Source of the DNA: Basidiobolus meristosporus CBS 931.73
Lineage: Eukaryota; Fungi; Basidiobolomycota
Length of the DNA: 64,000 nt
Reading direction: 5' to 3'
Assembly: GCA_002104905.1 (NCBI GenBank)
Contig: MCFE01000475.1
Span: forward strand, 1-64,000
The first letter of the stretch is position 1. Every line of letters begins with the position of its first letter. The position numbers and the translations under genes were made by a program. Under the pieces are notes generated by a model. It was not told where the DNA came from. It did not search any database and saw nothing but the letters and a program-made list of their open reading frames with translations. This document shows, one piece after another, positions 10,532 through 61,438 of this stretch.

Positions 10532-13500
10532 CAAGCTGTCACTCTCTGCAATGTCAACTACTGCTATTACTGGAATTTTTCCCTCTGCTGAAAAGTTGGA
10601 TGGATCTAACTACCAAGTGTGGAAGGTGAAGATGAAGATGCTGCTACAAGAAAGAGGCCTTTGGGATATTGTCATGGGAGAAGAATTCCCTCCTAAAAAC
10701 GTGGGAGAGGAAGCCTTGAAGTACCAGAAGAAAGAACAAAGTGCCTTTAACTGCATTTGCCTTAATGTCAAGGACAAATTGCTAATTCAATGCTCAAGAG
10801 CAAAAACGGCAAAGAATGCCTGGAAGGCATTAGAAGACACCTACTAGTCATGTTCAGCTGCCAAGAAAATGTATCTGAGAAGAAAATTCTTTGCTACAAA
10901 GATGCTGCCAGGAGAAGAAATGAAAAATCTAATTAACAGAATTACCCTGCTAGTAGATGAGATGGAATCTGTGGGCATACCAACTACTGATGAGGATGTG
11001 ATAGTTACCATCCTGAATAGCCTGACAGACAAGTTTCAGGGCCTTGTATCAGCCCTAGAGTCCAGAACTGAAGATTTGACCCTAAATTATGTATATGGAA
11101 GGCTCCTGGATGAAGAATTAAGAAAATCAAGTGCCAATAAGAAGGAAGAAGAAAATGCTTTAATAAGCAATGATAACCAACAAAGGAGGTACCCAAGACC
11201 CTACAAAGGCAACAGCAACCTATTTTGCAACTACTGCAAAAGGAAAGGACACACATCAGACCGGTGTTTCAAAAAGAGAGATTATCAGCAAAAGAAGCCT
11301 GAATATGGAAATGCTGCAACAACTGAAGATAGACTATTCATATCTGCACTAAATATGACCACAAACAAGGATTCTCAGATGTGGTATATTGACTCTGGAG
11401 CTTCTCAACACTTTACACACCAAAAAGAACTTTTTACCCAATATCAAGAAATTCCAATTAAGAAGGTTTTCATGGGTGACAATAGAACACTTGATGCAGT
11501 GGGAGAAGGAACTATCCAAGTAAACCTTAGAAGCAGTGAAGGAAGCCATACACTGACCTTTAAAGAAGTACTCTATGTACCAGAAATAGCCAAAAACCTA
11601 CTCTCTGTAAGCAAGGCCACAGCAGAAGGACTCAGTTTCAGTTTTGACAATTCTGGATGCAGGATCACTGATCAAAATGGTGCTCATATTGCTTTGGGCA
11701 TCAGAGATCAGAATCTATACAAGTTGACTTATATTCCATCATATCTGGAAGCCAATATAAGTAACTTAAATGAAGAAGCACCAATGCTTTGGCACAGGAG
11801 ATTAGGACACATCAATTTTGATTATTTGCATAAAATGATCAAAGATCAGCTAATTTCTGGAGTGAAAATTGATCCCCCAGCTAATTTGGAGCACTGTGAA
11901 GCCTGCATATATGGGAAACAAGCCAGACAACCGTTCAAGAGCTCTGGGTTAATCAAAACTAAGAAAAAATTAGATCTAATTCACTCAGATCTGTGTGGAC
12001 CTATGCAAAATTTATCCTTAGGCGGGATGAAGTATTTAATCACTTTTATTGATGATTATACAAGATACACATGGGTCTACTTCATGGAGAGAAAGGAAGA
12101 AGCTCTGTCTAAGTTCAGGGAGTTTAAAGCCATGGTGGAGAGAGAAACTGGTGAAAAAATCAAGAAAATACGCTCTGACAATGGTGGAGAATATACCTCA
12201 AAACTCTTCATCCACTTCTGCAAAATTCATGGGATAAAGCAAGAGACTACTGTACCATACTCCCCACAGCAAAATGGAGTAGCAGAACAAGCTAACAGAT
12301 CAATAATTGATATGGCAAGATCTATGATCCATGATCAAAAATTATCCTATGATTTTTGGGCGGAATCAGTTGCCACTGCTGTATATCTTAAAAATAGGAG
12401 TTATAACAGAATACTTCGTGATTCTACTCCACTTGAAGCATGGTATGGATACAGACCAAGTGCAGAACATCTAAGAATATTTGGGTGTACAGCATATGCC
12501 AAAAAACTGGCCGGAAATCAGTCAAAATTTGAGCCAAAAAGTGTAAAATGCATATTTTTAGGCTACTGCAATGAGAGTAAGGCATACAGACTCTACAATA
12601 CCGAAGCAAAGAAGCTGATCAAGTCCAGGGATGTGTTGTTTGATAAAAATTCAAAATTTTCACAAAAAATGACATCAGATGATGACGAAAATTTGATCTC
12701 AAGTCCACCAATTGTCAGGATTGAATCAGAGTAAAACAATGAAAATTTTTTCACTCCAGAGGACTCTACAACCGTGGTTCAGCCAGAATCAGTGCCCAGG
12801 AATATCCCAGAAGTGATCATTCCAGTATCAAATGCCCGGAGATCAAATCGGACAAGAAATAGCCCAAATTACTATATCAATGAGGGTACAAACTTAGCCT
12901 ATGCCTATTCAGTCCATATTGATGAACCCCAGACTGTAAAAGAGGCCCTAAATAGCCCTCAGACAAAGTTTTGGAGATCTGCAATGACTGAGGAATATCA
13001 GGCCCTGATGGAAAATCAAACTTGGGACTTAGTCTAATTACCAATCAACCAAAAATCAATTGGATGCAGATGGGTCTGCAAGACAAAATACAAGGCTGAT
13101 GGCACAATTGAAAGATACAAAGCAAGACTTGTAGCCAAAGGATACTCTCAAACAAAAGGACTTGACTATACTGAGACCTTTGCACCGGTAGCCAAGTTTA
13201 AATCCATCAGATTAATATTGGCTATTGCAGCCAAATATAAGTTTTTTATTCATCAAATGGATGTAAAAACTGCATTTTTGAATGGAGAACTTGATGAGGA
13301 CGTGTATATGGACCAGCCTGATGGGTTTGTTGACCAAAATAACCCCCATTTGGTCTGCAAGCTTAAAAAGTCACTCTATGGTCTCAAACAATCACCAAGA
13401 GCCTGGAATTGCAAGATAGATTCTTATTTGGAATCTTTGAGTTTCAAAAGGAGTAATGCTGACTATAGTATATACTATAAGCCAGATAGAGCAAGTCCAG

Positions 13501-14495
13501 TTCTATTAGCTCTATATGTGGATGATCTTATTATAGCCGCCAATAACCTAGAAACATTGGAAGAGACTAAATCCAGCCTATCTAAGGAGTTCAAGATGTC
13601 CGATCTAGGAGAACTTAGTTACTACTTAGGGATTAAGTTCTCCATAGACAGAAGTACCCAGACTATTACCCTAAGCCAATCCAAGTATATTCAAGATATA
13701 CTAAAGAAGTACAAAATGGAAGACTGTAAACCGGCAGCTACCCCAATGGAGACAAACCTTAACTTGATCAAAACTCAACCAAATCAAGAGAGCTTGGTGC
13801 CATCTGAAAGCCCTGACTTTCCTTATCAATCTATGGTCGGCAGTCTGATGTATATCATGCTTGGAACACGTCCAGATATCTCATATTCAGTGGGAGTTGT
13901 CAGCCAACATAATCAGAACTATGGATCTGATCATATTGCAGCAGTTAAGCGGATTTTTAGATACCTAAAAGGAACTGCTGATATCTGCTTAAGATACACT
14001 TATAAGGACTCAGAACAAGATCTTGTGGGATACTCTGATGCAGATTGGGGACAAAATTTGGAAGACAGAAGATCCACCACAGGATACACCTTTCTTTACT
14101 GTAAAGGAGCAATTTCATGGAATTCAAGAAAGCAACCAACCGTAGCACTTTCTACTACAGAGGCAGAGTATATGGCAGCCTGTGAAGCTACAAAAGAAGC
14201 AATGTGGTTAAGAAAGCTCTTTACAGATTTAGGCCTATGTCAAAAAACGCCTATTACTTTATTTCAAGATAATCAAGGATGTATACAATTAGGTAGAAAT
14301 CCAACTTTTCATGCTAGAACCAAGCACATAGATATTAGACATCATTTCATACGTGAAGCTATAGAGAATAACTTAGTTAGCTTAGTTTACTGTCCTACAG
14401 ATGAAATGATTGCAGACATATTTACCAAACCATTAGCTAGAGACAAGTTTGAATATCTTAGGTCAAAATTAGGACTAGTCAGTATGAACATTTAG
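10524..14495 (+). pseudogene. Copia gag-pol polyprotein (Gag/Zn knuckle, protease, integrase, RT, RNase H) with three premature stops
   Basis: One reading frame: KLDGSNYQVWKVKM, CNYCKRKGHTSDRC, WYIDSGASQH, HSDLCGP, RSDNGGEY, PQQNGVAE, HQMDVKTAFLNG, LYVDD, GYSDADW, TKHIDIRHHF. In-frame stops at 10845, 12732 and 13035. Confidence 0.97.
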
Positions 14496-24450: not shown

Positions 24451-27400
24451 TCACGATGTTTTGCTGAGCTCGTTCAGGCTAGCAATCAATATCCAATGGT
24501 CCTCTACATTGATACATACTTTAACCTGCTCCAGGATCTGTCGAAGCACTATTTGGACCTGGGCGAATGTTGAGTGCTGGCTCGCACTAACTGTGGTTGT
24601 AAGAAGTGTGATCAACCGCTTGATGATCTATTTCGAACGAATGAGTGTGAGCATCTATCGCTCATGATGATATGTGCAAATGCCCACTAACCTGTTGCTG
24701 CACCCGTTGCCTGGGAGTGGCGTCAAGTATCACTTGGGGTAATAAAAATGAGGTCTGTTGGATGATCAATTCCCGGGCATCTCTGCATAGCCACTCCTGA
24801 TAGCGAGGCACCCAAGTGTACTCCCGTTCCTCCAAATACTTGAACCATTTTTCGGAATCCGGCAACGTGGCGGGAGTTGATGTGCTTGAATCCCACCACA
24901 TGAGCAAAACTCCCCCAAGAATCCATGCCATTCCAGAACACAGAATGTCAAGGTTGATGTGCGACATTCCGTCACTGGACAGAATGATGAGGATGTCAAG
25001 GACTCGAACGATCCAATCCAGTTGCTCGCTACTATCTTGGGAAGTGGTGTAGAGGGTGCGGAGGATGTACAAAAATGTCCGTCGTGTGTCACGCTTATGA
25101 TCCTTGAGTGCCAATTTAAGAATGGTGACGAGGGAGCTCACAGTCTCGGCTCGCTGCAGCTCTACTAATGTGCAGACAGAAAGCACATATTTGCGTAGGT
25201 TCGCCGGTTCCAGAGACGAATGGTCATTCACATCCTGTAGACTGAACAAAGTGCATCGAACCATTTCTTGAATCACCAGCTCTTCCTCTACGGTGTCGGG
25301 GTCAGCAAGTTGGACGTACACGGGTCGCAGTAGATTCAGTAAATCCTTGTAAAGTCCAGCCACTTCACTGCTGACTTGGTTTGCGTGTTGTGGGTACTCT
25401 TGGAGATAATCACCAAGCGTTGTTAGGAATTGGCGTCTTAGTACCTATGGAAGGCTAGGGTTAGCACCCTTATGCTGAGTAAAACCAATTGCTACCTGAC
25501 GGTTACCTGATCCTTGCGCATTTCAAATAGGCCCCGGACCAAGATTTCCAGCAACTCGAGAACTCTCGAGGCAGGTAGCACCACCTTCTTCAGATCGGCG
25601 GAGGCACGTCGCTCCCTTTTTTCCCAGGTGATTTTCCCCTTGGCACATACGAGTCCACTGATGCTTAGCAACTGGCCGAGTACTCTGGGGGAAAATAGTA
25701 GCGCTTGTATCTCGGGATGCACGTGTTCCGCAACTGACTTTCGGATCAGTGAAATGATATATTCAACCAAAGAAGATGAGTACAGGCAGTGGGTGGCTGC
25801 GAACTGTATGCACTCTTTTTGAAGATCTAAGGAAGCATTCGCAAGTGAATGGAGAGGATACCAGTTGACAGGAGGAATGGGCGATTCTAGCAGAGTGCAG
25901 GAGTGAAGCAAGGTTAGGATGCTTTTGGTGAGATCCGAATCATGACTTGCCACGGAAAGCTCTGTTCAAGGAAAGTTAGATTCCACAATATGTAGGATGC
26001 CCAGTAAGGTGTGGAAACGTACTGATTGAAGCCTCTGTAATGCCTTCAAACACCGCTCGCAAATAGCTGGTGGGTGCCGGGAACCTTGAATAGTCTGGCG
26101 GTTCAGTGCTTACCGCTCCAGCCATGATACTCTCGTTCTGTTTAACCGTAAGTTCGTACACGACTCTTCCTAGTATCACTGCGGATATTCTGGCGCCTTT
26201 AATGTCTCCCATAGCGTCGTTGTTCAGGCCAGCACTCGAAGACAACGTCTGAATGATTTGAAGGACGATCTCGGGCTTGATCTTGGAGATATTGATTCTC
26301 AAGGCGTCTTGGGAATACGCGAAGAAATCGATCCCCAAGAGTATGCACAACGTGATCACTGAAATCAAACGATCGTCCTTCGAGACGGCTGTAGCAACGT
26401 TCTGCAGGTGGAAGTTGATTTGCGAGTAATAAGAGGGGAGCGAGGAGGTGGACGACTGACGGGATTGCACCAGCGAGTACAGCAGATAGGCGTAGCTCCA
26501 TTGGGCGTGCGAATTGCTGGACGGGAACTATCCGGGTTGTTAGTACAGGGCCGGCACGACGAAGTGGACGATATACTGGACTAGCCCTACCTTTGATTTG
26601 GCCACGTCGGCCGCTTTTTTCAATAAATTAAATACGTCCGCCCGAGGGTTTTTGCTTGCTACCACGGCGAGGATCCATAATGAGCTAGCAAATAGAGAAT
26701 GGTCCTCGACATCGAACTCCTCGTTGAGCGTGTCCTCGACAACTCCAAGTGAGCGATTGAAAAACACCTGATGTATCTCCGACTGCTCAGATAAGGATTT
26801 TCCTAGGCCAAACACGAGTGCGACGTTCACGTTAGTCGAGTGGGTCCCTGGAGAGTAGATCTCATCAACCCAATGGATCAGCTCGACGCGCAGATTGGCA
26901 GTGGACTCCGAAATAGTGGTCAAGCTGTAAAGTGAATCGATGATGATCCCTAGCCCATAGCCACAGCCAAATTGTGCCCACTCATGGTCGGTGCTAGAAC
27001 AAAGAAACAAATGAGCCCAATGGACAATGGAGAATACGCCAAGCAGACATACATGGGGGAGGCCTGTAGACCGCTAATGAGAAGCCCGGAAATCTCGACG
27101 AGCAGCTTTTCATCGCTTGGTATCAAGCCAGTCAATATGGCAATAGAGGTATACGCGGAGAACAACGTGTCATCTGTGACGCTTTGCGATGTGGGCTGAT
27201 CAACGATGTTCACTCGGAGATGGTGGATGATCCGTCGGGTCTGGGAAGTAGCAGAAGAAGAATTGATGTAGTGCATGTTACGAATAAGCCCTAGCCCAAT
27301 AGATTAGCATATATGTCCGTCTTTCAATCAAACCACACCAACCTGTTAGTGCAGCCACAATGTTGCAACTGGTCTTTGGAACTCTGGAGTTTTCCAATCT

Positions 27401-30400
27401 CTCCAGCAAGTCGGTGACCAGTTGGTCCATGATTGCTTCTTTATGCTTTGACTCGTAGGCAGTATCGAAAGTTCCATCGTTTTCGGGATCTTCAAACGTG
27501 GTTGAGAATAACGAGAACCACGCCTCGAAGATGCTCAAACGGGTGACCAAGTGGTCGGTTAATGATATGTCCTGGATTCCATCGGTGAGGAACCTGTAAG
27601 GTTTGGAAGATTTGAAGCTATGGTAGTCGGGATATGCCTCTGAGAATGGGATCTTCTCTTGCTCATTTATGAACCCGAAGCAGAACAAGGAAGCTAGAGC
27701 GTAGCCAACACGAAGCCCAGGCAGCACCTTTCCTCCCTTCCAGGATTCCGTAAACCTCTCGCCAGACCGGGTCAAAGACTCGAATAACTTCTCGTTCCCA
27801 GACGCATTTCCTTTGTGGGCACCTTTTCCTATGGTTCCTTTGAACATGGTTCGTCGCATGAACCGGATCTCATGCTGCATCAGGGTCAGCAACAGTTCGT
27901 GGTATTCATTTGGAGCATCGATGATTTGGTTGACTAGTAGCCTAGGAGTTTCAGGAAGGATGGGGAAGATCTCGGACGCTTCGAACTTTGCCAAACAAGA
28001 AATCACTGCCTTCTGCAGATCTTTGGGCAAGATCTTCCCTTCTTCTTCTGGGAAGATCAGAGGTTTGATGTAGTCGGATAATAAAGTGCTCTTGAAAAGG
28101 ACAAAATCCTCGCTTCCTGTGGAGCCATCGACACCGGTGTAAGTTTGGGTGGAGATCTCGTTTTCCTCTGCTAAACATCCACTTACCATCACTTTGCTTG
28201 GCAACTATGGAGTAGAATCCTGCAAGCTGGATTAGGACCAACCTGTCGGTCGTCTCCATCGCTTTTTTCGCTATCGGCAACAGGAGCACATTCCAAACTG
28301 ACACAGAAATCATCAATAACGCCACCAATTATTCGGCCAAATGCCAAACCATACCTGGCCTGGTCTCCGCGACGCCGGCTTGGATACATTCGTTGATGGT
28401 GGCCAGAGCGAGGCTCAAGCTTTGCGAGCTCAGTTTGGCGAATTGGACCAACGAGGAAACCATGGGGAAGATTTCGTGGCCATGCTCGTGGCCTTTGTGC
28501 TTGCATATGTCGCTGTCAACAACCGAATATCAGTACGCAACAAATCGATGTGTATGTAGCGGGGATCTACCTCATTGTCGCCAGAGCGGCGATTTCTATT
28601 TCGTATTTGGGATCGGTGCTCTCAATGGTTTTGCCTCCAGTAGCCATTTGCTTGCGCTGCTTTGTCCACTCGCTTAGAACATTTCTGAGCGATCTCCACA
28701 CCCGTGGCTGGCGTCGCCACAACGCGTAAACTCCGCGGATGCCTACAGCGTAGAGCGTGTTGTATCCGGCAATGCCTTTCTGAACAATGGTCATCGAGAC
28801 CTGGACGATCTTCGAGATCACAAAAGGATCGCCCGATTCAACTAGACGGGGGAAGCAGTGATGGATTATATGGGCCTCGACCTCTGGATACTTCTGATTC
28901 CGCATGACGTAGAGCAGTATCGGGAGTATTCCGAGAGTTCCAGGTTTGGGCGCATGAGTGGTGACCAAGGCTGAAAGACCCTTCACGCGGGTGCTCTGGT
29001 CTGGATGAAATGCAAATGGCACCGCGCAAAACCCGCTGACATTTGACAGATGAAAAGCCTCTGAGCTACTGGTTGAAATCAAAAGATTCTCGACACTCGA
29101 GCTCGTGTATAGCTGGGAAAGCTCAACTGTGATCCCGTTAAGATAAGCCATTATCCCTCTGATGTTAAGCTTCTGCGCCTTATCTCTGGACTTCTGGATT
29201 TCTTCTGCGACTTGCTCGGTATTGGCAGCGTGCTCAAGCGTTTCGATGCTATGAAGAAGCTGGACAGCCTTGTCTTTCAACGTGTCCAGAGTCCCCTCAG
29301 TTAGCACTTGAATGAGTGGGAACCTGGCAGTATTGCAGACAAAGGGGACACGTATCAGTCCGTCTTCGGAGCTTTCCAGCAACGAAGCAAGCATATAGAG
29401 CAAAATCTCCTGGTGATCGGATGACGGAGCATCAAGGAGCAAGTAGCTCACTATGGGAAACAAGAGATTGAAATACGTGGCCATAAGAGAGACTATCTTC
29501 ATGTCATACTCCATCAACTGTCGGATCTGGGAGAGCAGGGACAATGTGGACAGCCCATCGTAGCTCATGCTACAGATCGTAGCAAAAGTTTCGATGACGA
29601 ACTCGATTCCAAGTGTCTGGAATGCCTTTTCCTTGTTTTCCCGGATCTCTTCCAGCAACAGTTGCACGAACAAATCCGTGACAAGGTAACGCAAGTTATC
29701 CAACTTCACTCTGGGCGTAGGGATTCGACGGAGCACGTCGACCAAGTATCGAAGGATGTAACCCCGGTCCACTTCATGGTCCAAACGATATGTTCTGATT
29801 AACACATTGACCATGGTTACTCGCCAGCTCTGGAAACTGTCGTTCTCACTCAGCAGCACGAAATCAATAAACGGCTTGATTAACTCGAAGCCAGAGTAGA
29901 GTTTTGTCCGGCGCTCCAGATCAGTCCCGGAGTAAGCCTGCTTCTTGAGGATGTGCTCAACTCCCGAGAGGATCGAGTCCCACGTTTCCTCCTTGGCGCT
30001 AGCCACCACGATGAGTGGATGGGTCTTGCCTCTAGAGGAGCTTACTGTGAATGGTGAGGAGAGGAAATCTTTGGGTGAGCCGGCTTGTCCACTCTCGACA
30101 TAAAACACAAAGAGCTCGAACAGGGCTTTCACCGCGTTATCGAGCTGAATCTTCGACATGGTATCTAGGGCGCCCACAAATCCATTCACCGAATCGAACC
30201 AACCAAGGACGCCCTTTTTGGTCAGCAAAATAAGCGAAGAGGCTGCCGCCGAGGTGGTAATAGCTGAGGCCTTGGAGGAGGCGACACATTCCCATAATAA
30301 TGAAATGGACAGCTGGGTTTTCTGGTCTGTAAACGTGGGAGAGGCCAAAGTCAAGCGATTGGGGGCGTTGATTCGAGAGCCCAAGCATTGCTCCAGCAAT

Positions 30401-30474
30401 TTCCGAATGCTCTGAAGCTGCACTCCCCTGTGGGGTGAATACAGTCGTCGCTGGTATTCTAACTTGAAGTCCAT
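24451..30474 (-). CDS. Large multi-exon helical-repeat protein, focadhesin/RST1 (DUF3730)-like
   Basis: Consecutive minus-strand ORFs (28567-30498, 27278-28204, 26950-27276, 26540-27010, 25976-26470, 25492-25953, 24662-25363) separated by short GT-AG introns. The motif ALWRRQPRVW..EIAALATMR followed by HGHEIFPMV recalls DUF3730. ATG at 30474, TGA at 24451. Confidence 0.75.
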
Positions 30475-30749
30475 GCGTATCGGTTTGTGGAATATCAAGC
30501 TGGGCTATGGTCAGCTGCAGGATATTCAGTGCTTCGTGCTAGCCAAATCAAAAACCGGGGCGCCAAACGGCTCCCCCATACGTAATGTGGTTGAAATTTA
30601 TTTACTCAAGAAAACATATTGCAAATCGCCATTTATGTTCATGCTGCTTGGGGGCTGATGTGGATTTTAAGCATGTATAGAGACATGACAGGCTTGACCA
30701 TTTTTACACCATCGGTCCCTCGATGAGGGCAATCGATTGGGAGTGGGAT

Positions 30750-31694
30750 CTAGACCATGCTGGGAGTAGTGTACATGGAGTCCCATTGGGAATCGAAAAT
30801 CATGAATCTGTACCACAAAAACCAGATAAAAATGGTGGACGCGTGCCATAGCGAGTGAGCGTCGAATACTTCGAAGATGGGCGGGAAATCAAACAACTCA
30901 AGAGACACGGCAACACTGATGAGTAGGCCACACTTCAATGGCTCCCAGCGGTACGGGTGGTTGGGATTGACCACGCACCAGTAGCCCCAGGTGATATTCT
31001 GCAGAATCCCAACGATCACGTTCGCCCACATGTTGTAAGTGTAATCAAAGCTCCAGAACGACAGATACGAGATGTGTAGCAGATACGGAATCAGCAACAA
31101 CCCACCCAGTCGAATCTGGTTTTTCCTATCGCGCACGTGATTGATTCTTAGTAATGCTACATAGAGTCCGTACATAACGGTCAAGGCTGCGGAGAAGTAG
31201 TCGAATTTCTCGGTGACCGGGGTATCTCTGGTGTGAAACACTGCCGACCATAGCCAGGTGTTCACCCCCACCACCACGAACATGTAGTAGAATCTTTTCA
31301 GGAAGTATCCCTCTGGCACTTCGGACTTGATCACCTTCCAGTGACGCCAGTGTGCCCACCCGTTCAAAATGCTAAACGCCACACTGGCCGGCTCCTGCAT
31401 GCCCAGGAACCGGACGAACGGCCATTTCCCATAATACTGTACAACCGGTTGGCCCGCCTCTCGGGTCCTCTGGGTGATCTCCCGCATGCAGGTATATTTA
31501 CAATTGCTTTCACAGCTCCAGAAGGTCAAGCGCAACGAAAGGGGAAGGGTAGGGTTCGCCGCACAGGTGGTTCCGTTACACCTATCCAGACAGGCGAGGA
31601 ATTCGGGCTCCGTGTCGCCGTAGCCTTCGGCGGACACTGGAATCACTAGTAACAACAGTCCGAGCAACAAGCGGGTTGACCAAGCGCGCGTCAT
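30750..31694 (-). CDS. PER1: Per1/PGAP3 GPI-anchor remodelling protein, intronless
   Basis: Signal peptide, Cys-rich lumenal domain, WSCESNCKYTCM, QYYGKWPFVRFLGMQEPASVAFS, WSAVFHTRD, EKFDYFSA, ELFDFPP, DAHSLWH. Confidence 0.96.
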   Translation of the reverse strand: MTRAWSTRLLLGLLLLVIPVSAEGYGDTEPEFLACLDRCNGTTCAANPTLPLSLRLTFWSCESNCKYTCMREITQRTREAGQPVVQYYGKWPFVRFLGMQEPASVAFSILNGWAHWRHWKVIKSEVPEGYFLKRFYYMFVVVGVNTWLWSAVFHTRDTPVTEKFDYFSAALTVMYGLYVALLRINHVRDRKNQIRLGGLLLIPYLLHISYLSFWSFDYTYNMWANVIVGILQNITWGYWCVVNPNHPYRWEPLKCGLLISVAVSLELFDFPPIFEVFDAHSLWHASTIFIWFLWYRFMIFDSQWDSMYTTPSMV

Positions 31695-32098
31695 TTCGAA
31701 GACACTGACATACACTTGGCTCGCAGGCCCTCCGAGCGCTTATATATATGCATTTAGCCGACGCCGAAAATCCTTTTCTGCGGTGTATTAGCCAAGGATT
31801 TACCCGAACCCAATGGGATGGCCCTCCTGCCATTTTGGTCAAAAGGTGGGAATCAATTCGGAAGTGAGGCCAGATGCACAATTTCCTGGCAAATCAATTA
31901 GTCCAACCCGGCTGAAGACGATCATTTAAGCAGAGTCGGGACTTGCGTCATTGCCAACCATGGAGATACTTTTCATACTTTAATAAACTTGTAAATTAAA
32001 CAGAGAAAAATTCAACGTTATAGCAAGAGGGGGCTGATGAGATGGGATGAGTGCGTGTGATGAAAAAGATCAGATAAACCAAAGGCTTGGTGGGCGGT

Positions 32099-36581: not shown

Positions 36582-37230
36582 GAAAGTATTGGCTGTGCCG
36601 TGCTACGGTAACTGCTAACAGGAGGAAGAGTGTGGTAAGAGAAAATCCTTGTTCAAACCTTATCAAGTATGCACGATAGGGGTTAGAACACGACTGCTAT
36701 ATTTGAATGAAATGCGGGTTATATCCGAAGTATCCAATGCCGCCGTAGAATTGGTATATTATCCCGTCAGTGGATGGAGTCGCTCCAAATGATCACTGGA
36801 AATTGTATCGTTTGTGCCGTATATCAACAACTTGACCAATGGTCGCCCAACACGCTCAAACCGAATTTGCCTTCGGCCTCCCCTCGCGAGACCATCAGAT
36901 GATTAGTAATCTGGCTATCTGCCTGGCCACCCAACCACCCCTCAAACAAATTCTAACCCGCACTCCGGCGAAGGCAGCCTAATCTAACTAACATTCAACA
37001 TTAGTGAAAGCAAACTGACTAACAGTGAAGGCAAACTAAATAAATCTCGGGTGATTTCCTAACGATCGACTCAAGCCAATGATAATTCCACTCGAAAAAA
37101 AAACTTTCCCATCTGGGTCACGTGGTACGTGGGGACGTCCTGCTGCCGTTGGGTTATGAGTTCAAGGAATTTGCCAGTGGCGGGTTCTTTCTCTCGTTTC
37201 TTTCGTGACCAAAGTATCCTCTTCCTCAAG
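36582..37230. promoter_or_regulatory. Divergent promoter region shared by the acetyl-CoA transporter and RPL36
   Basis: Head-to-head gene starts. Contains GTCACGTG (bHLH E-box-like) at 37117-37124. Confidence 0.5.
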
Positions 37231-37641
37231 ATGGCCGTCACCCAAAGATCTGGTATTATCGTTGGTTCCAACAAGGGTCACATCACCACCCGTCGTGAAT
37301 TGAAGGTCAAGCCTTCCCACAAGAAGGGCGTAAGTAGCATTTCCAAATCCAAGCCATTTCGTTGGATGGATTCCAAGCCAACGATGGATATCTTTCGTAA
37401 TCCCCGATGCTGACCGACCCATTCCTAGGTTGCTTCCAAGCGTGTCAAGTTCGTTCGCGAGATCGTCCGTGAAGTCGCCGGTTTCGCTCCCTATGAGCGC
37501 CGTATTCTCGAACTTCTGAAGAACTCCAAGGATAAGCGTGCCCGTAAGCTCGCCAAGAAGAGACTTGGTACCTTCATCCGTGCCAAGGCCAAGGTCGAAG
37601 AAATGTCCAATGTCATTGCTGAATCTCGTCGTGCCCATTAA
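37231..37641 (+). CDS. RPL36: 60S ribosomal protein L36 (eL36)
   Basis: [23 protein letters not shown]|[59 protein letters not shown]. Intron 37330-37428. Confidence 0.97.
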
Positions 37642-38279
37642 GTTTCCTCTTGATTCACCACATATTCTTGGGCCAAAGGTCGCTTAGTCGAGACCTCTCA
37701 CCGACGTGAGTCTTCTTGCTCTATTCGTGTTCCCTTTGGCCAAAATGAAGTCTACTTTGATACGTCTTTGTATTTGAAGTATTTCTTTCAAATAAATCGA
37801 TGTCGTACATATGTTTTGTCTCAGTGAACCGGTGTTAGACCTGGGCAACTTACCCCAGTATCAATCATCTGGTCATGATCTCCGGATTGTTTGTTTATCT
37901 TACCACCCCCAAACAATCACAATTCCTGGATCACGTATCCCTGTCTTTCACTTAGGGTGGCTTAGCATTTCACTCCACTGTAGCTAAGCCACTAAACCAC
38001 TGCGAACGTTTCGTTGAATTGAATCATACAGAAAGTATGGTCAATAAGGAAAACTTACTGGTCGTCTCTCCTGATTAGCATCTGAATTGGTGGCTGATGA
38101 AGCGCCTGGCGATACATCATCACATCACGTCAATATATGCCATCTAACTCTCTGGTACACCATATGTCGCCATGCATTCGACCGGATTTTCTATAAATGT
38201 TAACCCCACCACCACTCAGTCGACATCTTCAAGCTACTGCAGCTTTCAGAAACCCCAGTTTCCTCTCCACCAGTAAAGT

Positions 38280-39434
38280 ATGAGTTATCACAATATTGGC
38301 CGTAATGTTTCTCGCGGAGATCAGGGCCGTCAAGAGATGGAAGAGCGCTATGGTCTTGGAAAAGGCTATGAACGCGAGAGAAGAACCGGTAAAGAAATGA
38401 ATGAGGGTTACGATCAAGATGAAATGTATGGCCGTCATGGTGGTCAGCATCGTCCTTATGGCCGTCATTATAACGATGAAGATGATATGGAATATGGTCG
38501 TGGTCACATGGGCCAAAGGTACGGCCGTCGATATGATGAAGACATGGACTACGGCCGTGGCCGCATGGGTCAAAGGTATGGTCGCCGCTATGATGAAGAC
38601 ATGGAGTATGGTCGTGGTCGCATGGGTCAAAGGTACGGTCGTCGCTACGACGAAGACATGGAATATGGCCGTGGTCGCATGGGCCAAAGGTATGGTCGCC
38701 GTTATGATGAAGACATGGAGTATGGCCGTGGCCATATGGGTCAAAGGTATGGCCGTCGATATGATGATGAAGACATGGAGTATGGCCGTGGTCGCATGGG
38801 TCAAAGGTATGGTCGCCGCTACGACGAAGACATGGAATATGGCCGTGGTCATATGGGTCAAAGATATGGTCGTCGATATGATGATGAAGATATGGAGTAT
38901 GGCCGTGGTCGCATGGGCCAAAGATATGGTCGTCGCTACGACGAAGACATGGAATATGGCCGTGGCCATATGGGTCAAAGATATGGTCGTCGATATGACG
39001 ATGAAGATATGGAGTACGGCCGTGGTCGCATGGGCCAAAGATACGGTCGTCGCTACGACGAAGACATGGAATATGGCCGTGGTCGCATGGGACAAAGGTA
39101 TGGCCGCCGTTATGACGAAGACATGGAATATGGTCGTGGTCACATGGGACAAAGATACGGCGGTCGTTATGATGAAGACGAGGGGATGGAGTATGGCCGT
39201 GGTCGCATGGGCAACAAATTTGACCATGGCTTCGACAATGACATGGAATATGGTCGTGGTCATATGGGACAAAGATATGGTCGCCATTATGATGAAGACG
39301 AGGAGATGAAGTATGGCCGTGGCCGCATGGGCCAGAGATATGGCAGTCATTTTGACGAAGGCATGGAATACGGTCGTGGCGGTATGAGTCAGAGATATGG
39401 CCGCCACTACGGCGGAAGAATGGGCTACGAGTAA
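38280..39434 (+). CDS. Unknown 384-aa Arg/Gly/Tyr/Asp-rich tandem-repeat protein
   Basis: Sixteen 19-21-aa units YGRG(R/H)MGQRYGRRYD(D)EDME from 38493. TATAAA at 38192. Units differ mostly at third codon positions. Confidence 0.85.
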   Translation: MSYHNIGRNVSRGDQGRQEMEERYGLGKGYERERRTGKEMNEGYDQDEMYGRHGGQHRPYGRHYNDEDDMEYGRGHMGQRYGRRYDEDMDYGRGRMGQRYGRRYDEDMEYGRGRMGQRYGRRYDEDMEYGRGRMGQRYGRRYDEDMEYGRGHMGQRYGRRYDDEDMEYGRGRMGQRYGRRYDEDMEYGRGHMGQRYGRRYDDEDMEYGRGRMGQRYGRRYDEDMEYGRGHMGQRYGRRYDDEDMEYGRGRMGQRYGRRYDEDMEYGRGRMGQRYGRRYDEDMEYGRGHMGQRYGGRYDEDEGMEYGRGRMGNKFDHGFDNDMEYGRGHMGQRYGRHYDEDEEMKYGRGRMGQRYGSHFDEGMEYGRGGMSQRYGRHYGGRMGYE

Positions 39435-39943
39435 GATGAGGACATGAAATATGGCTGGAGGAAGAGCCAAATGAACCCTCGTCGTTCAATGTATTATGAT
39501 GAAGAGGGACTTTCTTTCTAATGTTCAGGCTAATATCCCAGCATTGCGCCGAACCTTGTAACCAACAGTATCAATAAAATCTCTTTCTCTAATAGGAAAC
39601 CTCAGTGATATATTGTCTTATGCGTACGGGTTCTGCTATTCTTGCTCCAGATCGTTTATTAACGTTGATGTACAAATCATGCTTACCAGTGTGGAATGGA
39701 ATTGAACTGGAATAGGTTAGCGAAGACCAATACAATCATTTAAAATAATCAATAGCAGCGACCAATCAGATGCGTATATCAGATGGACTCGGGAATGGTC
39801 AAGCTCATCAAAATCGAATTAGACAACGGTAGTGGGGATAAAATTTGGAATGTTACAGGCCGGGAACAATTACACGGAAGTCAACGGGGGAAAATACAAC
39901 AAAAACCTATCAAGAATGGGAGGAGAGGGGAGTCGACGACCTT

Positions 39944-41995
39944 CTAACAGGGGAATTTCTCTTTCATGGAGAGTGGGTGTTTGGCGGTGAACGAATAGCC
40001 AGAAAAACAGTCTTGTACACTGGAACTCAAGTGATGTTTAGGTGGGGAAAGACGCGGTGTCATCTCCAAGAAGGTTTCGTCGAAGTTTGATAGATCTTGC
40101 TCGTCACTTAGCGGTGGTATATAAGGGCTATCTATCTGCTTGCTGTAGAGTTGATCCCAGTCAATGCCCTTGAAGTAAGGATGCGATTTCACATCTTCAG
40201 CACCATTAGCACCGCTTCCAAGTCTGTTTGCAGGATTCCTCTCCAAAAGCTGACAATATACCAGTTAAAAACGGCGGGGAATAAACTACTGCATTGACTG
40301 GTAAACTTACCCCAGCGATGAAGCTCATAGTATTTTCATCCAGATCCAAATCATCCGGGAATTCGAGTTCGTCTTGAAGCACTCGATGATACATGTGCGC
40401 GTGGTTTTCCGCCCAGAACGGTGTCTATAAGGGTGATGCGTAAGCAACACTTCTCACTGACATAACTTACGGAAAACCTACTATTCCGGTGAGCATTTCG
40501 TAGAGTAAAGTTCCCAAGCTCCACCAGTCGACTGCGAATCCGTAGTCCTCGGCCCTTAATACCTCAGGTGCAAGATACTCCGCAGTACCACAAAAGGTAT
40601 TAGTGGTCGGGGCGTTAAAGTGGAAACTGCTGTCAGAGATTTGCTTAGAGAGACCAAAGTCCGTGAGAACAATGTGACCGTCGTTGGCGATCAAGATATT
40701 CTCTGGTTTCAAGTCCCTTCGATTCGGATTTAGATAGTGGCCAGCCAAGACATCAGACAAACATAACACATACCTATACACAATACCAAGACGATGCAGC
40801 TCCTGGATCCCTAGGACAATCTCCGCCGCATAGAACTGGCATCTTTCCGGAGAGAAGGAGTGCCATTTGGCCAACTGGGTGGCAATATCACCGCCTGGAT
40901 AGTAATCGAGAACCAAGAAAAGCTGGGATTTGGTTTGGAACGAGTGGTGGAGACGGATCAAGAAAGGATGTTGCACCGAGGTGACGGTGGCGAGGATGTT
41001 CCGCTCAGAGTTGGTGTGCTCGATCTCCCGGTGAAGAATCACCCATTCCTTGGAGATTGCCTTCAGTGCCATGAGCTTGCCACTTTTGTACTCTTTAACC
41101 AGTAGCACCTTTTGGATTGGGGTCATTGAAGTTAATCTTCGAGCCAGGCATGGACCATGTGAACGTATCTAGTAAACCAACCTTTCCCATGCATCCTTTC
41201 CCAATCACTTTGATCAGGTGGAAATCCTCCAAGGTGATCTTGTTCCCAACACTGGACGCTGGAGTCTTGGGTAGATTTTCCTCAGAGGAGCTTTCAGAAG
41301 GCGCGCTAAGTTCCTTTTTATGCTTGCTGTCTCCGTCATGATGTAAGGTAACAAAATCCTTGAAAATGATCGAAGCCCGCAGTCTAGGATCGCTGACCAC
41401 CTTCTTTAGGTATTCATCGACTTTGCCGACGTTGGATTTCTTGATTATGTACTGTCGAGAGATAATGTTCTTCCGTTCGTCCAACGGTGGTAACGGGGGT
41501 CGATTCTTCGGGAAATTCTGCTTGATCTGAGGAAAATTCCCCGGATGGATGAGTTAGTCCAGTTTAGTATATTGGCAAGGTGGGGGGGGGGAGTGAGCAA
41601 TATGCGCACCTTTTGGTCAAAGTCAATGAAATCTTGCGAATATCTGGTGAGCTTTACAATCTGGCTACGGTCTTCGTAGAATACCGCGAAGCCCTAAGGA
41701 CAGTTAGGTTTAGGGTGGTATGAGGGCTGAACTATCACGACTGTACCATGCCGAGTTTGGTTAGCTTCATCGATTTGGGTGGGGCTTCTTCTACAGTAAC
41801 CGTAGGGGCTGCCAGGTCGTTTGCTGACGCATTGGTCAAGGTGATGCTGGTAGATTTTGCTGAGCTTTTGGACAATGAGGATGGAGGTATCATACTGTTG
41901 AGCGATTTTGAATAAAGAGGCGCGCTTGGAAGTGAAATGGAATTCGATAATTTAGCAGCCGGAGACGCTATTCTATAACCTAGGGTATTGAGCAA
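39944..41995 (-). CDS. PX-domain AGC Ser/Thr kinase (SGK/CISK-like architecture), multi-exon; exact start uncertain
   Basis: PX-like segment (QDFIDFDQK..FPKNRPPLPPL..DEYLKKVV..FKDF), VIGKGCMGKV, ALKAISK, YRDLKPEN, TDFGLSK, TFCGTAEYLAPE, DWWSLG, NFDETF, hydrophobic motif FSGYSF. Confidence 0.92.
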
Positions 41996-56599: not shown

Positions 56600-59500
56600 A
56601 TGCCCTTACCACTCTCACATGGGGCCCTACAGTTTGATGGAAAGAATGTGGAAAGCTTCATATTCAAATGGGAGAAGCTCTGCAAGATGTGCAGCCTATC
56701 TGAACAAGAAATGACTGAAGACTTCCCCTACTACTGCACCAATGATATTACTACTAAGCTTCTCAGACAAGGAGACATTCTCACTGACTGGGCCTTAATG
56801 AAGACCTACCTACAGACCAAGTATGGTAGACCCCAGATATACTACGGAATTGAAGACCTCAGACACTTCGGAAGGACAAGACTCTCCAAGCTACCACTTG
56901 AAGAGTTCATTCAACAGTATGAAGATATGGCCAAGCCACTCCTAGAGTCCCAGGCTATAACTGAGTTTACCATGACACTTTACCTTGCACAAGGGCTTCC
57001 CCAGGACTTGGCAAGGAAGGTTGACTTACATGCGGCAAAGGATGACAAGTCTGGCATTCCTTGCTTTGCAGAGATGAAATGTGTACTCCTAGAGGCAAAA
57101 CAGACTTCTACCTTTATGAGACTCCTGACATCTAATCTGCAAGACCAGTCAACCAAGGAGCCAAAGAGTGCTATTGTTGACAATCAGACCTACACTACCA
57201 ACAGAATTGACCAACTTGCTGAACAGTTACAAAAGCTAGCCCTCAAGATTAACGGCTCAGCTGAGGTAGCTACTGAGGGCCAAAGACCTTTGCCCAGACA
57301 CTGCATCTGGTGTGACTCTACCCAGCATGCCAGACAAGAATGCTCAGAACTTATTCAGCTACTTTGAGAAGGAACAGTGCAGTTTGATGCTGATGGAATG
57401 CTTGCTGACAAGGAAGAAAAAAGGATTCCCACTAATTTCTGAAGAGGTGGAATGAGAGCCCTTTTCCAGAAGTCTGACTCAGCAAGTAGAAAGATTACTG
57501 TTGATGCCCCTATTGAGACTCATACAGTGGTTCCAAGCAGCCCTGACAACAGAAAATACAAAGTAGATGCCTTTGCTACCAAGAGACACCTTGCTGAAGA
57601 ACCTGTTAAGCCCATCCTTAGAAGACCATGGTTTGAAGAGCCTGAGGTTATCATTGACAAGAGGCCTGGAATACTGCCCACCCAAGACCCATTGCCTCAC
57701 TTTCAGATGACCTCAAAGATAGCAGGCTACTCAAGCCCTCAACTGATTACTGAGAAACTGCTGAAGCAGAACCTCACTTTGTTGGTTGGAGAAATCATGA
57801 GTGTATCACCAACTGTTAGGAAGACCTTTGATGAGCAGCTAAGAACAAGAAGACAAGCTGTTGAACATATGGACTCCCATATAATCCAGACAAACCATGA
57901 AGACCACCAAAATGATGACAACACTACTAAATATACAACCTTTTACTCAGTTGCAACTGCTGTGGTGAAAGGGTATATATATGATGACCCTGTTGACTGC
58001 CATATTGACAGTGGTTTAGAGATTTGTGTTATGCCGCTAGACTTCTGGAAGACACTTAGAAGCAAGGAGCTACTGCCTGTTGATAGGGATATTGGATGGA
58101 ACATGACTGATGCAAACTCAGGATCTAACCCACTCTATGGTGTAGTGCACAAGTTCCCTATTGAGGTACAAGGAATCATGGTCTGGCTTCCCCTCTTTAT
58201 CTACCAGAAGGCAAACTTTGACCTTCTGTTAGGCAGACCATGGGAGACCAGTACTAAGGCTACAACTATCAACTATTCTGATGGGTCAGTGTGGTACACT
58301 ATACAAGGATCAAACCCAGCACTACAGTCAACATTCTGTGGGGTAACACCCAACAATAAGAGAACACATACTGCTTGCCAGAAGACACAGCTTGTTATAG
58401 AAGAAGATGAGGAGCCTGACAATATACACCCCAACAGTTGGAGCTGCTCATTAGGTATACAGGAGCAGACTGCTATGATTTGCACAAAATACAAGACAGT
58501 AGAACAGAAGATTGAACCATGCCTTACACCTTTAACTGATGGATCTTGACCTGCTGATTACATCAGAACACCAGAAGGAACACCTGCAGATATACAACTT
58601 ACACCTGAGAGACTTAAGCAACTTATCATTGGTGATGGAAATCTAACACCGGAGGAGATCTTATTATTTGAAGAAACCCTGAAAAGACATGATAAGGTTT
58701 TCTCAAATAATGATAAGGAGATGGGCTCTTAAAGACATTGGTTGAAAAACCTATCAAGATTCATACAGTGCCCCACACACCTTGGTCATTTAAGCCTTAC
58801 CCACTGCCTAGGGGACTCCAAGCTGATGTGAATGACCTACTTGAGAAGAAGATTGAAGCTGGTATCCTAGAACCTTGCCATGGACCTTATGCTAACAGAC
58901 AGTTTGTGACCAAAAAGAAGAATGGAAAGCTCCAATTCATTCAAGACATGCAACCTGCAAATGCTGTCACTATCAGAGATGCCGCAATACCTCCATCTAT
59001 TGATGACTTTGCAGAGAGCTTTAGTGGTCACTCCATCTACTCAGCATATGATCTCTACTCAGGATATGACCAGATCCCCCTAGATGAGACATCAAGAGAT
59101 ATGTTTGCACTCCAAACACCATTTGGACTATTATGAATGACAAGACTCAGCCAAGGGGCAACAAACCCCGTGGCTCAGTTCCAGAGATGCATGGTGAATG
59201 TGCTCTACCAGTTTATACCTGAGAAACTTGCTGTCTTTGTAGATGAAATAGGCATCAAAGGACCAAAACTCCAAGACACAACTGAAGTTAAGCCTAGAGT
59301 AAGAAAGTTTGTCTATGACCATATCTCAGACAATGATGCCATATTAGGAGCCATTGAAGAAGCTGGACTCATCATCAGTGGTGAGAAAAGCAGCTTTGGT
59401 GTATCAGAGATATCCATTGTTGGACAAAAATGCAACACCTTTGATTGTTCACCTGGAGACTCCATGACACAAAAAATATGCAACTGGCCTACCCCCACAA

Positions 59501-61438
59501 ATCTAACACAAGCTTGTGGCTTTGTGGCAGCTTGTGGGTTCTTTAGGATCTGGATCCCAAGATTTTCTGAAATAGCAGAACCAATTTATCAACTACAGAG
59601 AAAGAATACCCCATTTAACTGGGGAGAAGAGCAAGAAGAAGCCATGCAATTACTAAAAGAGGCCTTAGTATCTCCACCAGTTCTGAGACCTCTCAACTAT
59701 CAGAACACTGAATGCCCACCTATCTTGACAGTGGATGCAAGCCCTATAGGAGCTGGAGCACTACTTGGCCAAGATGATGAAGAGGGCAACCACTATGCCT
59801 GCAGATATGAGAGCTGCCTCTTCTCTCCTAGAGAGCAAAGATGCTCACAGATTAAGAGAGAGCTACTAGGAGTTGTGAAGATGCTGAGAAAGCTGAAGTC
59901 ACAACTCTACATGACATATTTCATCCTGGAGACAGATGCTAAGCCACCTATAGGAATGATCAACAAGCCTGACCTACCTGATGATGCCACAAATTGGTGG
60001 ATGGCATGGCTGAAGATGTTTGACTTTGAGGTCAGACATATCCCTGGCAAGACAAATGTTGTGGCCAATGCACTCTCTAGGAAGGGACCACAGTTGTCTG
60101 AAGATATGGACCCAGACTTTGATGACATAATTGATGCAGAAATCCAACAACTACATGTGAAGAAGCCCAGCAACTTTCCGTGGAACACCATTCAAGACTA
60201 TCTGAGAACCTTAGAGAAGCCTCCAGGAATGGGCCCACATGATTTCAGAAAGCTCAGGAAGAAGGCCCATCATTTCTACACAAAGGATGGCCTCCTCTTC
60301 AAAAAAGCCTGGACAGACACCAAGGAGAGTTATAGTTGAGCCCCAGGAACAACTGACTATTATGTCAAGCCTTCATGAAGGAAGACCTTGTGGTCATGGA
60401 GGCAGAGATGCCACATACAATGTTGTTTCCAGTAGATATTACTGAGAGCATATGCATCATGATGTCCAACACTTTGTTGAGTCTTGTGACATTTGCCAAA
60501 GAAGGTTAACCAAGAGATATGAGGAGCTGCTCCATCCAACCTACACACCTTGCCTATGACAGAAGGTTGGAATTGACCTGGTCCACATCCCAACTGCTGG
60601 AACCAAAAAGTACCTAGTTGTTGCCAGAGATGATCTGAGTGGGCGGGTAGAAGCTCAAGCTCTATCTAATAACAAAAGCCACACAATATGGAGATTTATT
60701 CTTGAAAATATAATATGCAGATTTGGCTGCATCAGCCAGTTTGTTGCTGACCAAGGAGAAATGACTTCAAATTTGGTCCAGGAACTCTGCTCACAATACA
60801 AGATTCATATTTCTTTCACCACCGCTTATCACCCACAAGCCAATGGAATGGTTGAAAGAGGCCATGGCCTGTTGGTTAACTGCCTAGTTGAGAGCTGCAA
60901 GAACATGACACTACAGTGGCCTAGACAACTTCATCTAGCACTCTGGGCAGATAAAATCACTACAAAACTCAGCACAGGCCTATCTCCATTCAAGTTGCTT
61001 TATGGACATGATTGCATTCTTCCCATGGAGCTTGACTCAACATCCTGCAACATGCTAGAGTGGAGAACTACAATGAGTACAGAAGAACTACTGACTACAC
61101 GCATCAAATAGCTTGATCACCATGGACTTGATATAACCCAAGCAGCTGCTAAACTCAAATAGACAACACTTCAGAACAAGGAACCATTTGACAAGTCACA
61201 TAGCCTTAGACCAAAGCCATTAATGCAAGGAGATCCAGTACTGCTCTATGATTCCACTTTAGACAAGCAGTGGAGTTGCAAGTCTGACAATAAGTGGTCT
61301 GGCCCATATATTATCTCCAAGGTGATTGGAAATGGAAGCTACTACTTGTCTGAACTTGATGAAACATGGGTAAGAGCACCTGTGGCAGGAAACAGACTTA
61401 AGCTATTCAAGCACTGGAATTTTGCACATCACATTTAG
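56600..61438 (+). pseudogene. Gypsy gag-pol (Gag with CIWCDS Zn knuckle, protease, RT, RNase H, integrase; no chromodomain seen)
   Basis: CIWCDSTQHARQEC, HIDSGLEICVM, DLYSGYDQIPLD, AVFVDEIG, LTVDASP, ETDAKP, HIPGKTNVVANALSR, TAYHPQANGMVERGH, WSGPYII. Many TGA stops and frameshifts. Confidence 0.95.

Follow-up and report, generated by a model that had tools for sequence, protein, structure and literature searches.

Does the tandem repeat that lies between the genes for ribosomal protein L36e (RPL36) and an AGC-family protein kinase in the fungus Basidiobolus meristosporus CBS 931.73 encode a protein, and if so, of what kind? The repeat lies within an intron-less open reading frame (ORF) at 38280-39434 on the forward strand of the stretch of DNA analyzed here, which comprises positions 1 to 64,000 of contig MCFE01000475.1 (64,000 nucleotides, hereafter the window). 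An initial annotation, made from the letters alone, had reported this ORF as a charge-blocked Arg/Tyr repeat protein of 384 amino acids, and the ORF is present as claimed, from ATG to TAA. It is a genuine gene, and the sequence of the repeat protein that it specifies is under strong purifying selection. What this protein does can be addressed more tentatively from its composition and charge pattern, which are suggestive of a chain that associates with itself.

Architecture of the repeat

When the protein is split at every YGRG, 16 units of 19-22 amino acids are obtained, each consisting of a basic block of about 11-14 residues, with three Tyr and four or five Arg spaced by Gly, followed by an acidic block of 5-7 residues. 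Units 2-11 match the consensus YGRG(R/H)MGQRYGRRYD(D)EDME exactly: their amino acids vary only at unit position 5, which is either Arg or His, and by an additional Asp that the His-type carries. Unit 1 is off by one residue. Units 12-16 are increasingly degenerate, and the array is thus a conserved centre with diverged edges. Tandem Repeats Finder reports one period of 57 nt (15.9 copies, 77% matches) and another of 117 nt (8 copies, 84%). A degenerate back-translated pattern of the basic block has 15 matches in the whole window, all of them at this locus (0 expected from shuffles).

In units 5-10, a His-type unit of 20 amino acids and an Arg-type unit of 19 alternate three times. Units two apart in this part of the array differ at 2-4 of 54 core nucleotides, whereas adjacent units differ at 8-10. 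These differences confirm the three copies of a 39-amino-acid higher-order repeat that the initial annotation had proposed, and its count of sixteen units also holds. The His/Arg alternation persists in degenerate form in units 12-15. A longer acidic block is found in five of the six His-type units and in none of the nine Arg-type units (Fisher p = 0.002, with units that are not independent events). The Arg-type unit has a net charge of +1 and the His-type unit of -1, and the double unit is neutral.

The array does not end cleanly at the stop codon. The TAA falls at the position of a Tyr codon of the unit, and the 28 codons that follow in frame look like the decayed remnant of further units. 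The array therefore seems once to have been longer, with a 3' end that was truncated or has decayed.

Selection on the reading frame

The Nei-Gojobori calculation was run in every frame on eight units of 57 nt. In the forward frame of the ORF, the proportion of synonymous differences (pS) is 0.52 and that of non-synonymous differences (pN) is 0.011, a ratio of 0.02, and 12 of the 13 variable columns fall at codon position 3. For the first 12 units, compared over their cores, pN/pS is 0.042. Because values from pairs of units are not independent, the changes within the youngest duplicates were counted as well. The His-type units 5, 7 and 9 and the Arg-type units 6, 8 and 10 contain 10 variable sites in total, and all 10 are synonymous third positions, in units that hold about four non-synonymous sites for every synonymous one; this outcome is far from the neutral expectation. 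Gene conversion homogenizes both kinds of site alike and cannot yield a bias toward synonymous changes only, which thus reflects strong purifying selection on the protein sequence. The initial annotation had stated that neighbouring units differ mostly at third codon positions and that the protein is constrained, and had named the ratio of non-synonymous to synonymous divergence (dN/dS) as a check; both statements stand, with pN/pS at 0.02-0.04 and so far from 1.

Of the six reading frames, four stay open throughout the array (Table 1). In the three frames other than that of the gene, pN is 0.13-0.15 and pS about 0-0.05, and coding in an antisense or the +1 frame was rejected on this ground. 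With pN greatly above pS, the three overlapping ORFs are by-products of the repeat. The product of one of the antisense ORFs would be a repeat rich in His, Cys, Asp and Pro, which could be mistaken for a metal-binding protein.

The constraint extends to single residues. Among units 2-11, there are no exchanges between Arg and Lys, Tyr and Phe, or Asp and Glu, and Met and Gln are invariant, despite a near-saturated synonymous divergence between the unit types. Such invariance suggests a sequence-specific constraint, for instance from a binding partner, a modifying enzyme or an ordered assembly, that models based on composition only leave unexplained.

Composition, charge and predicted disorder

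The protein consists of 21.4% Gly, 20% Arg, 14% Tyr, 21% Asp plus Glu and 10% (9.6%) Met, whereas Ile, Leu, Val, Phe, Trp, Cys and Ala together account for only six residues, none of them Cys. Its 80 Arg plus Lys are balanced by 81 Asp plus Glu, such that 42% of the residues are charged and the net charge per residue is -0.003. The charges are segregated into blocks, with a kappa of about 0.27-0.33 (z = 6 against shuffles); in the smoothed charge profile, positive blocks are mostly 11 residues long (or 3 + 7 in the His units) and negative blocks 5-6. Tyr residues recur at regular spacings of 4, 6 and 9 residues, and three dipeptides, all in the basic block, are about threefold enriched: YG (35 observed, 11 expected), GR (44 and 16) and RY (28 and 10). 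By contrast, RG occurs 17 times where 16 are expected and so is not enriched, although there are 16 GRG triplets. The charge blocks and the clustering of Tyr with Arg, both put forward in the initial annotation, are thus real and non-random.

The isoelectric point is 7.48, and the calculated net charge shifts from -0.1 at pH 7.5 to +15 at pH 5.5, mainly through 14 His residues, which recur at a fixed position of the unit. Met occurs 37 times and occupies two invariant positions per unit. The single Pro of the protein sits in an HRPY motif (aa 57-60), within an H-x5-PY arrangement at aa 53-60.

With a grand average of hydropathy (Kyte-Doolittle) of -2.06, the protein is predicted to be fully disordered. 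AlphaFold2 gives a mean pLDDT of 36 and no secondary structure in the array, and its only predicted helix lies at aa 12-24 (pLDDT about 63-65); the model was run on the single sequence without an alignment, which makes it weak evidence, and it agrees with the composition. No hydrophobic segment was found in the N-terminus or in the whole protein, which excludes a signal peptide or membrane anchor and agrees, together with the low pLDDT, with the earlier statement that the protein has neither a signal peptide nor a folded domain. The protein is thus probably cytoplasmic or nuclear and not secreted.

Searches for relatives

Searches for relatives covered sequence families, protein collections, structures and metagenomes. 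No Pfam family matched at E up to 10, and this includes LEA_1 to LEA_6, dehydrin and SMP. A word-indexed search of 5.8 billion protein clusters gave no match at E up to 1e-3 or up to 10, and an exact-sequence look-up in a protein collection found neither the 384-amino-acid protein nor five other ORFs of the window. There was no usable match in the ESM Atlas, nothing below E 0.01 in a sequence search of PDB, no match in Rfam, no relative in metagenome scans (with the protein and with a degenerate DNA pattern) or in a viral scan, and no paralogue elsewhere in the window by tblastn. A full HMMER search of 1.84 billion representative proteins of all lengths returned 17 matches (E 1.9e-9 to 4e-4), which were rejected as homologues. 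On inspection, all proved to be tandem-repeat proteins with no relation to the query; they include a neuropeptide precursor of the FMRFamide type, two BURP-domain proteins of plants and miscellaneous repeats. No Basidiobolus protein came up in this search or in the word-indexed one. The initial annotation had recognized no family, and the Pfam, protein-database, HMMER and PDB searches likewise give no credible homologue.

The best look-alike at the level of the motif is P0123, an uncharacterized metagenomic protein of 619 amino acids from a cluster of five members on contigs of 14-31 kb. It contains about a dozen RRYGRR(F/Y)-acidic repeats, and shares with the repeat protein a repeated Q-x-RYGRR-aromatic-acidic motif that resembles the end of the basic block. 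HMMER gives the pair an E of 8.6e-8 with 43% identity over the matched stretches, and composition-adjusted pairwise BLASTP only an E of 0.01. P0123 differs in unit length and context. Its Pfam matches, to a zinc ribbon (CPNCGH) and to DUF7575, are weak and below the cutoff, and in PHROG it weakly matches a Lar-like family of restriction alleviation. The resemblance is most likely due to convergence. The repeat protein would thus be a new, lineage-restricted sequence family of a known physical kind.

Comparison with known protein classes

The closest physical parallel is the disordered N-terminal region of Ddx4, a protein of nuage or germ granules. To form droplets, Ddx4 needs alternating-charge blocks of 8-10 residues and aromatic-Gly and RG/GR motifs within the positive blocks, and scrambling the charges or removing the aromatic residues abolishes the droplets (Nott et al., 2015; PMC4352761). 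Both chains are near-neutral and disordered. As judged from its sequence, the repeat protein has both features in an extreme periodic form: its charge blocks alternate repeatedly, with asymmetric lengths (about 11-14 basic and 5-7 acidic residues) instead of the 8-10 of Ddx4, and its positive blocks are enriched for aromatic-Gly and GR through YG, GR and RY, not through RG. However, there is no sequence homology between the two and no helicase domain is attached to the repeat protein, which uses Tyr instead of Phe, is rich in Met, has a charge density of 42% (about 25% in Ddx4) and, as a perfect tandem repeat, is far more regular.

A second parallel is with the hydrophilins and LEA proteins. 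Hydrophilins are defined by a Gly content above 6% and a mean hydrophilicity index above 1.0 (PMC11277543), and the repeat protein exceeds both values (21.4% Gly, hydrophilicity about 2.06). It is also disordered, with a hydrophilic motif that recurs about every 20 residues. For a member of this class, however, Tyr at 14% and Arg at 20% are unusual, and no LEA or hydrophilin family matches it.

The initial annotation had compared the protein with FUS and had noted RG motifs as substrates of protein arginine methyltransferases (PRMTs). The repeat protein is indeed rich in Tyr and Arg, potential stickers with Gly spacers between them, as in the FUS family, but it lacks RGG boxes and an RRM, and its Tyr and Arg are in one block and not in separate domains. 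A FUS-type prion-like domain was rejected on composition, with Gln plus Asn at 6.5%, Ser at 1% and 42% charged residues, and with no PLAAC-type scoring run; the FUS comparison thus does not hold. RGG/RG-motif proteins are defined by tri- or di-RGG or tri- or di-RG motifs spaced by 0-4 residues. The repeat protein has a single RGG (aa 366) and no RG-x(0-4)-RG pair, and membership of this class was rejected. On the same counts, and because RG is not enriched, the PRMT argument is weak.

A proposed self-associating, pH-tunable protein

Our preferred reading, to which we assign a probability of roughly 0.4, is that the repeat protein forms a self-associating, pH-tunable condensate or gel. Since both features required in Ddx4 are present in the repeat protein, multivalent self-association would be its most likely behaviour. 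Its 16 units would make a highly multivalent chain that is almost exactly neutral at about pH 7.5. The basic blocks would pair with acidic blocks of other chains, and Tyr-Arg and Tyr-Tyr contacts would add cohesion, giving a reversible, salt-sensitive condensate or gel. Self-association should peak at about pH 7.5, the point of neutrality, and change on acidification. Cytosolic acidification occurs, for example, in starvation or dormancy, and because the 14 His would take the chain from near neutrality at pH 7.5 to a net charge of about +15 at pH 5.5, assembly or the binding of RNA or another polyanion should respond to it. The 37 invariant Met could in addition make the assembly sensitive to oxidation; Met oxidation reportedly controls the phase separation of the Pbp1 low-complexity domain (review, PMC8394241). 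As the protein exceeds both numerical limits for hydrophilins, a protectant role in drying or dormancy would be the natural biological setting. We infer self-association, tuning by pH and redox state, and any role in stress or spores.

Several observations weigh against this proposal. The invariance of single residues in units 2-11 is stricter than phase separation driven by composition needs. No orthologue was seen among the annotated proteins of Basidiobolus ranarum in protein searches; given a pS of about 0.5 between units, the array looks old, and a missing orthologue is unexpected unless it is likewise unannotated. The codons used do not clearly mark a highly expressed gene, the GC content at third codon positions being 0.44 in the repeat gene and 0.48-0.70 in neighbouring genes. 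Finally, the repeat protein is absent from the deposited protein set of its own genome, although the product of the Per1-family neighbour on the same contig is present. Since the gene is missing even there, blank protein databases do not show that it is absent from other Basidiobolus genomes.

A bolder form of the preferred reading is a long shot. The invariance of single residues would here mean that the protein is more than a sticky polymer. It would form an ordered, switchable assembly, a gel or glass gated by pH and Met oxidation that turns the cytoplasm of the Basidiobolus spore solid when it acidifies and dissolves once the spore germinates. The protein would then represent one of several such families expanded independently in the genus, and a fungal counterpart of the CAHS-type protectants of tardigrades that evolved from scratch.

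If expressed, the repeat protein is a natural protein that looks designed, with sixteen near-identical sticker-and-spacer units, zero charge at cytosolic pH, titratable His and oxidizable Met. Such a protein would offer a clean system in which to study the control of phase behaviour by charge blocks, Tyr/Arg contacts, pH and redox state. It would also be a candidate player in stress or dormancy in an early-diverging fungus that has been little studied.

Alternative readings

The protein could instead bind or chaperone RNA in the nucleus or nucleolus, with Arg/Gly/Tyr blocks that contact RNA, acidic blocks that auto-inhibit or mimic nucleic acid, and HRPY, in its basic N-terminal context, serving for nuclear import as a signal of the PY type. 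Nucleolar proteins often have acidic and basic tracts in alternation, and the 16 GRG triplets and threefold enrichment of GR would suit such a role, as would the placement of the only Pro within H-x5-PY. Ddx4-like droplets, moreover, concentrate single-stranded nucleic acid (PMC4352761). Pfam, however, finds no RRM, KH or other RNA-binding domain, the definition of an RGG/RG-motif protein does not apply, and with a net charge of about 0, polyanions would have to compete with the acidic blocks of the protein itself. That Tyr should follow the only Pro would happen by chance with a probability of about 0.14. Overall, we regard a role in RNA binding as unlikely.

Somewhat less probable still is a hydrophilin- or LEA-like molecular shield, which would protect proteins and membranes during spore drying or osmotic stress while remaining soluble, without a separate phase. 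The composition agrees with both hydrophilin values, the chain is predicted to be fully disordered, and a hydrophilic repeat of about 20 residues resembles the repeat architectures of LEA proteins. Basidiobolus makes resting zygospores and air-dispersed conidia, in which a shield of this kind could serve. Against this, no LEA or hydrophilin family of Pfam matched even at E up to 10, and a chain so rich in Tyr and Arg, with its charges in blocks, is more likely to self-associate than simply to shield. Inspection of 37642-38279 by eye revealed no stress-response promoter element, which is weak evidence.

An extracellular role is very improbable. The protein would, for example, either help the sticky capilliconidia adhere, as a coacervate rich in Tyr and Arg, or be a polyprotein from which cleavage at RR pairs releases 16 peptides. 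The motif of RYGRRY type recalls the Gly/Tyr/Arg-rich adhesive proteins of mussels, which is a lead only, the protein has 12 dibasic sites, and the weak HMMER matches include precursors of repeated peptides (FMRFamide-type and plant BURP-domain). Yet there is no signal peptide or hydrophobic segment, the neighbouring genes encode RPL36 and an AGC kinase and no processing or modifying enzymes, and the dibasic sites are all RR pairs internal to the units, with no KR motif for Kex2 between them. A Kex2-processed precursor or a precursor of ribosomally synthesized and post-translationally modified peptides was rejected on the same grounds.

We give equally little credence to a buffer for metals or oxidants, in which the 37 Met, 14 His and 81 carboxylates would bind Cu, Zn or Ca, or reversible oxidation of Met would scavenge reactive oxygen. 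The high Met content with its two invariant positions per unit and the fixed position of His are what such a buffer might show, but Cys is lacking, and the known copper motifs of the MxxM type are spaced differently from the Met here (M-x6-M, then 10-11 residues).

That the array is not a gene in the forward frame at all, but a minisatellite with chance open frames or one whose product comes from an antisense or +1-frame ORF, could be argued from the four open frames and the lack of a gene model in protein databases and is almost certainly wrong, since only the forward frame shows synonymous-only variation, the other frames having pN well above pS, and variation in a non-coding satellite would not concentrate at a single codon position, as 12 of the 13 variable columns do.

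Genomic context and annotation

The repeat ORF stands alone in an interval of 2.3 kb, about 640 bp from RPL36 and about 510 bp from the stop codon of the AGC kinase gene (Table 1). Tandem repeats are commonly masked ahead of gene prediction. The lack of a gene model could stem from such masking or from a lack of transcript support; that the Per1-family protein was deposited while the repeat ORF is absent suggests that masking removed the latter from the annotation. The next matches of the Per1-family ORF after its own protein are in B. ranarum (76%) and among B. meristosporus paralogues (58%). Strongly selected, repeat-rich genes can thus be missing from the deposited protein set of a fungal genome, so that orphan disordered proteins are probably undercounted in such genomes.

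Table 1. Positions in the window of the repeat gene, its parts, candidate signals, overlapping frames and neighbouring features.
Feature	Position	Strand	Basis or remark
Coding sequence, intron-less, ATG to TAA, 384 aa + stop	38280-39434	+	ORF list; sole frame with pN/pS far below 1
N-terminal 71 aa	38280-38492	+	Strongly degenerate relatives of the unit; sole predicted helix; single Pro
16-unit array, aa 72-384	38493-39431	+	Basic Tyr/Gly/Arg/Met block, then acidic Asp/Glu/Met block
Three copies of the 39-aa (117-nt) higher-order repeat, units 5-10	38721-39071	+	His-type 20 aa + Arg-type 19 aa
In-frame degenerate repeat past TAA, 28 codons to next stop	39435-39521	+	Translation and sequence
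TATAAA, TATA-box-like candidate core promoter, about 85 bp 5' of ATG	38192-38198	+	Read from the sequence
AATAAA, candidate polyadenylation signal, about 140 nt past the stop	39573-39578	+	Sequence motif
Overlapping ORF, 429 aa	38200-39489	-	Open frame across the array
Overlapping ORF, 413 aa	38229-39470	-	Open frame across the array
Overlapping ORF, 302 aa	38401-39309	+ (+1 frame)	Open frame across the array
Ribosomal protein L36e (RPL36), with introns	36900-37641	+	Upstream neighbour; last exon ends at 37641
AGC-family protein kinase, with introns	39944-41126	-	Convergent downstream neighbour; C-terminal exon with FSGYSF hydrophobic motif
Per1-family ORF	30750-31712	-	Own protein P0001 in public collection (NCBI, UniRef, nr, EukProt)
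307-aa ORF, no Pfam family	27278-28204	-	GC-richer, gene-dense part
642-aa ORF, no Pfam family	28567-30498	-	GC-richer, gene-dense part
Copia-type gag, integrase and reverse transcriptase remnants, low-GC stretch	10869-14495	+	Retrotransposon remnants
Reverse transcriptase, RNase H and DUF4100 ORFs	56600-60339	+	Retrotransposon remnants

Upstream of the repeat gene, about 290 bp 5' of the ATG, a 10-bp inverted repeat is found at 37957-37995 (+), with the arms GTGGCTTAGC and GCTAAGCCAC separated by a spacer of about 17 bp. It could be a binding site for a regulator or a chance occurrence.

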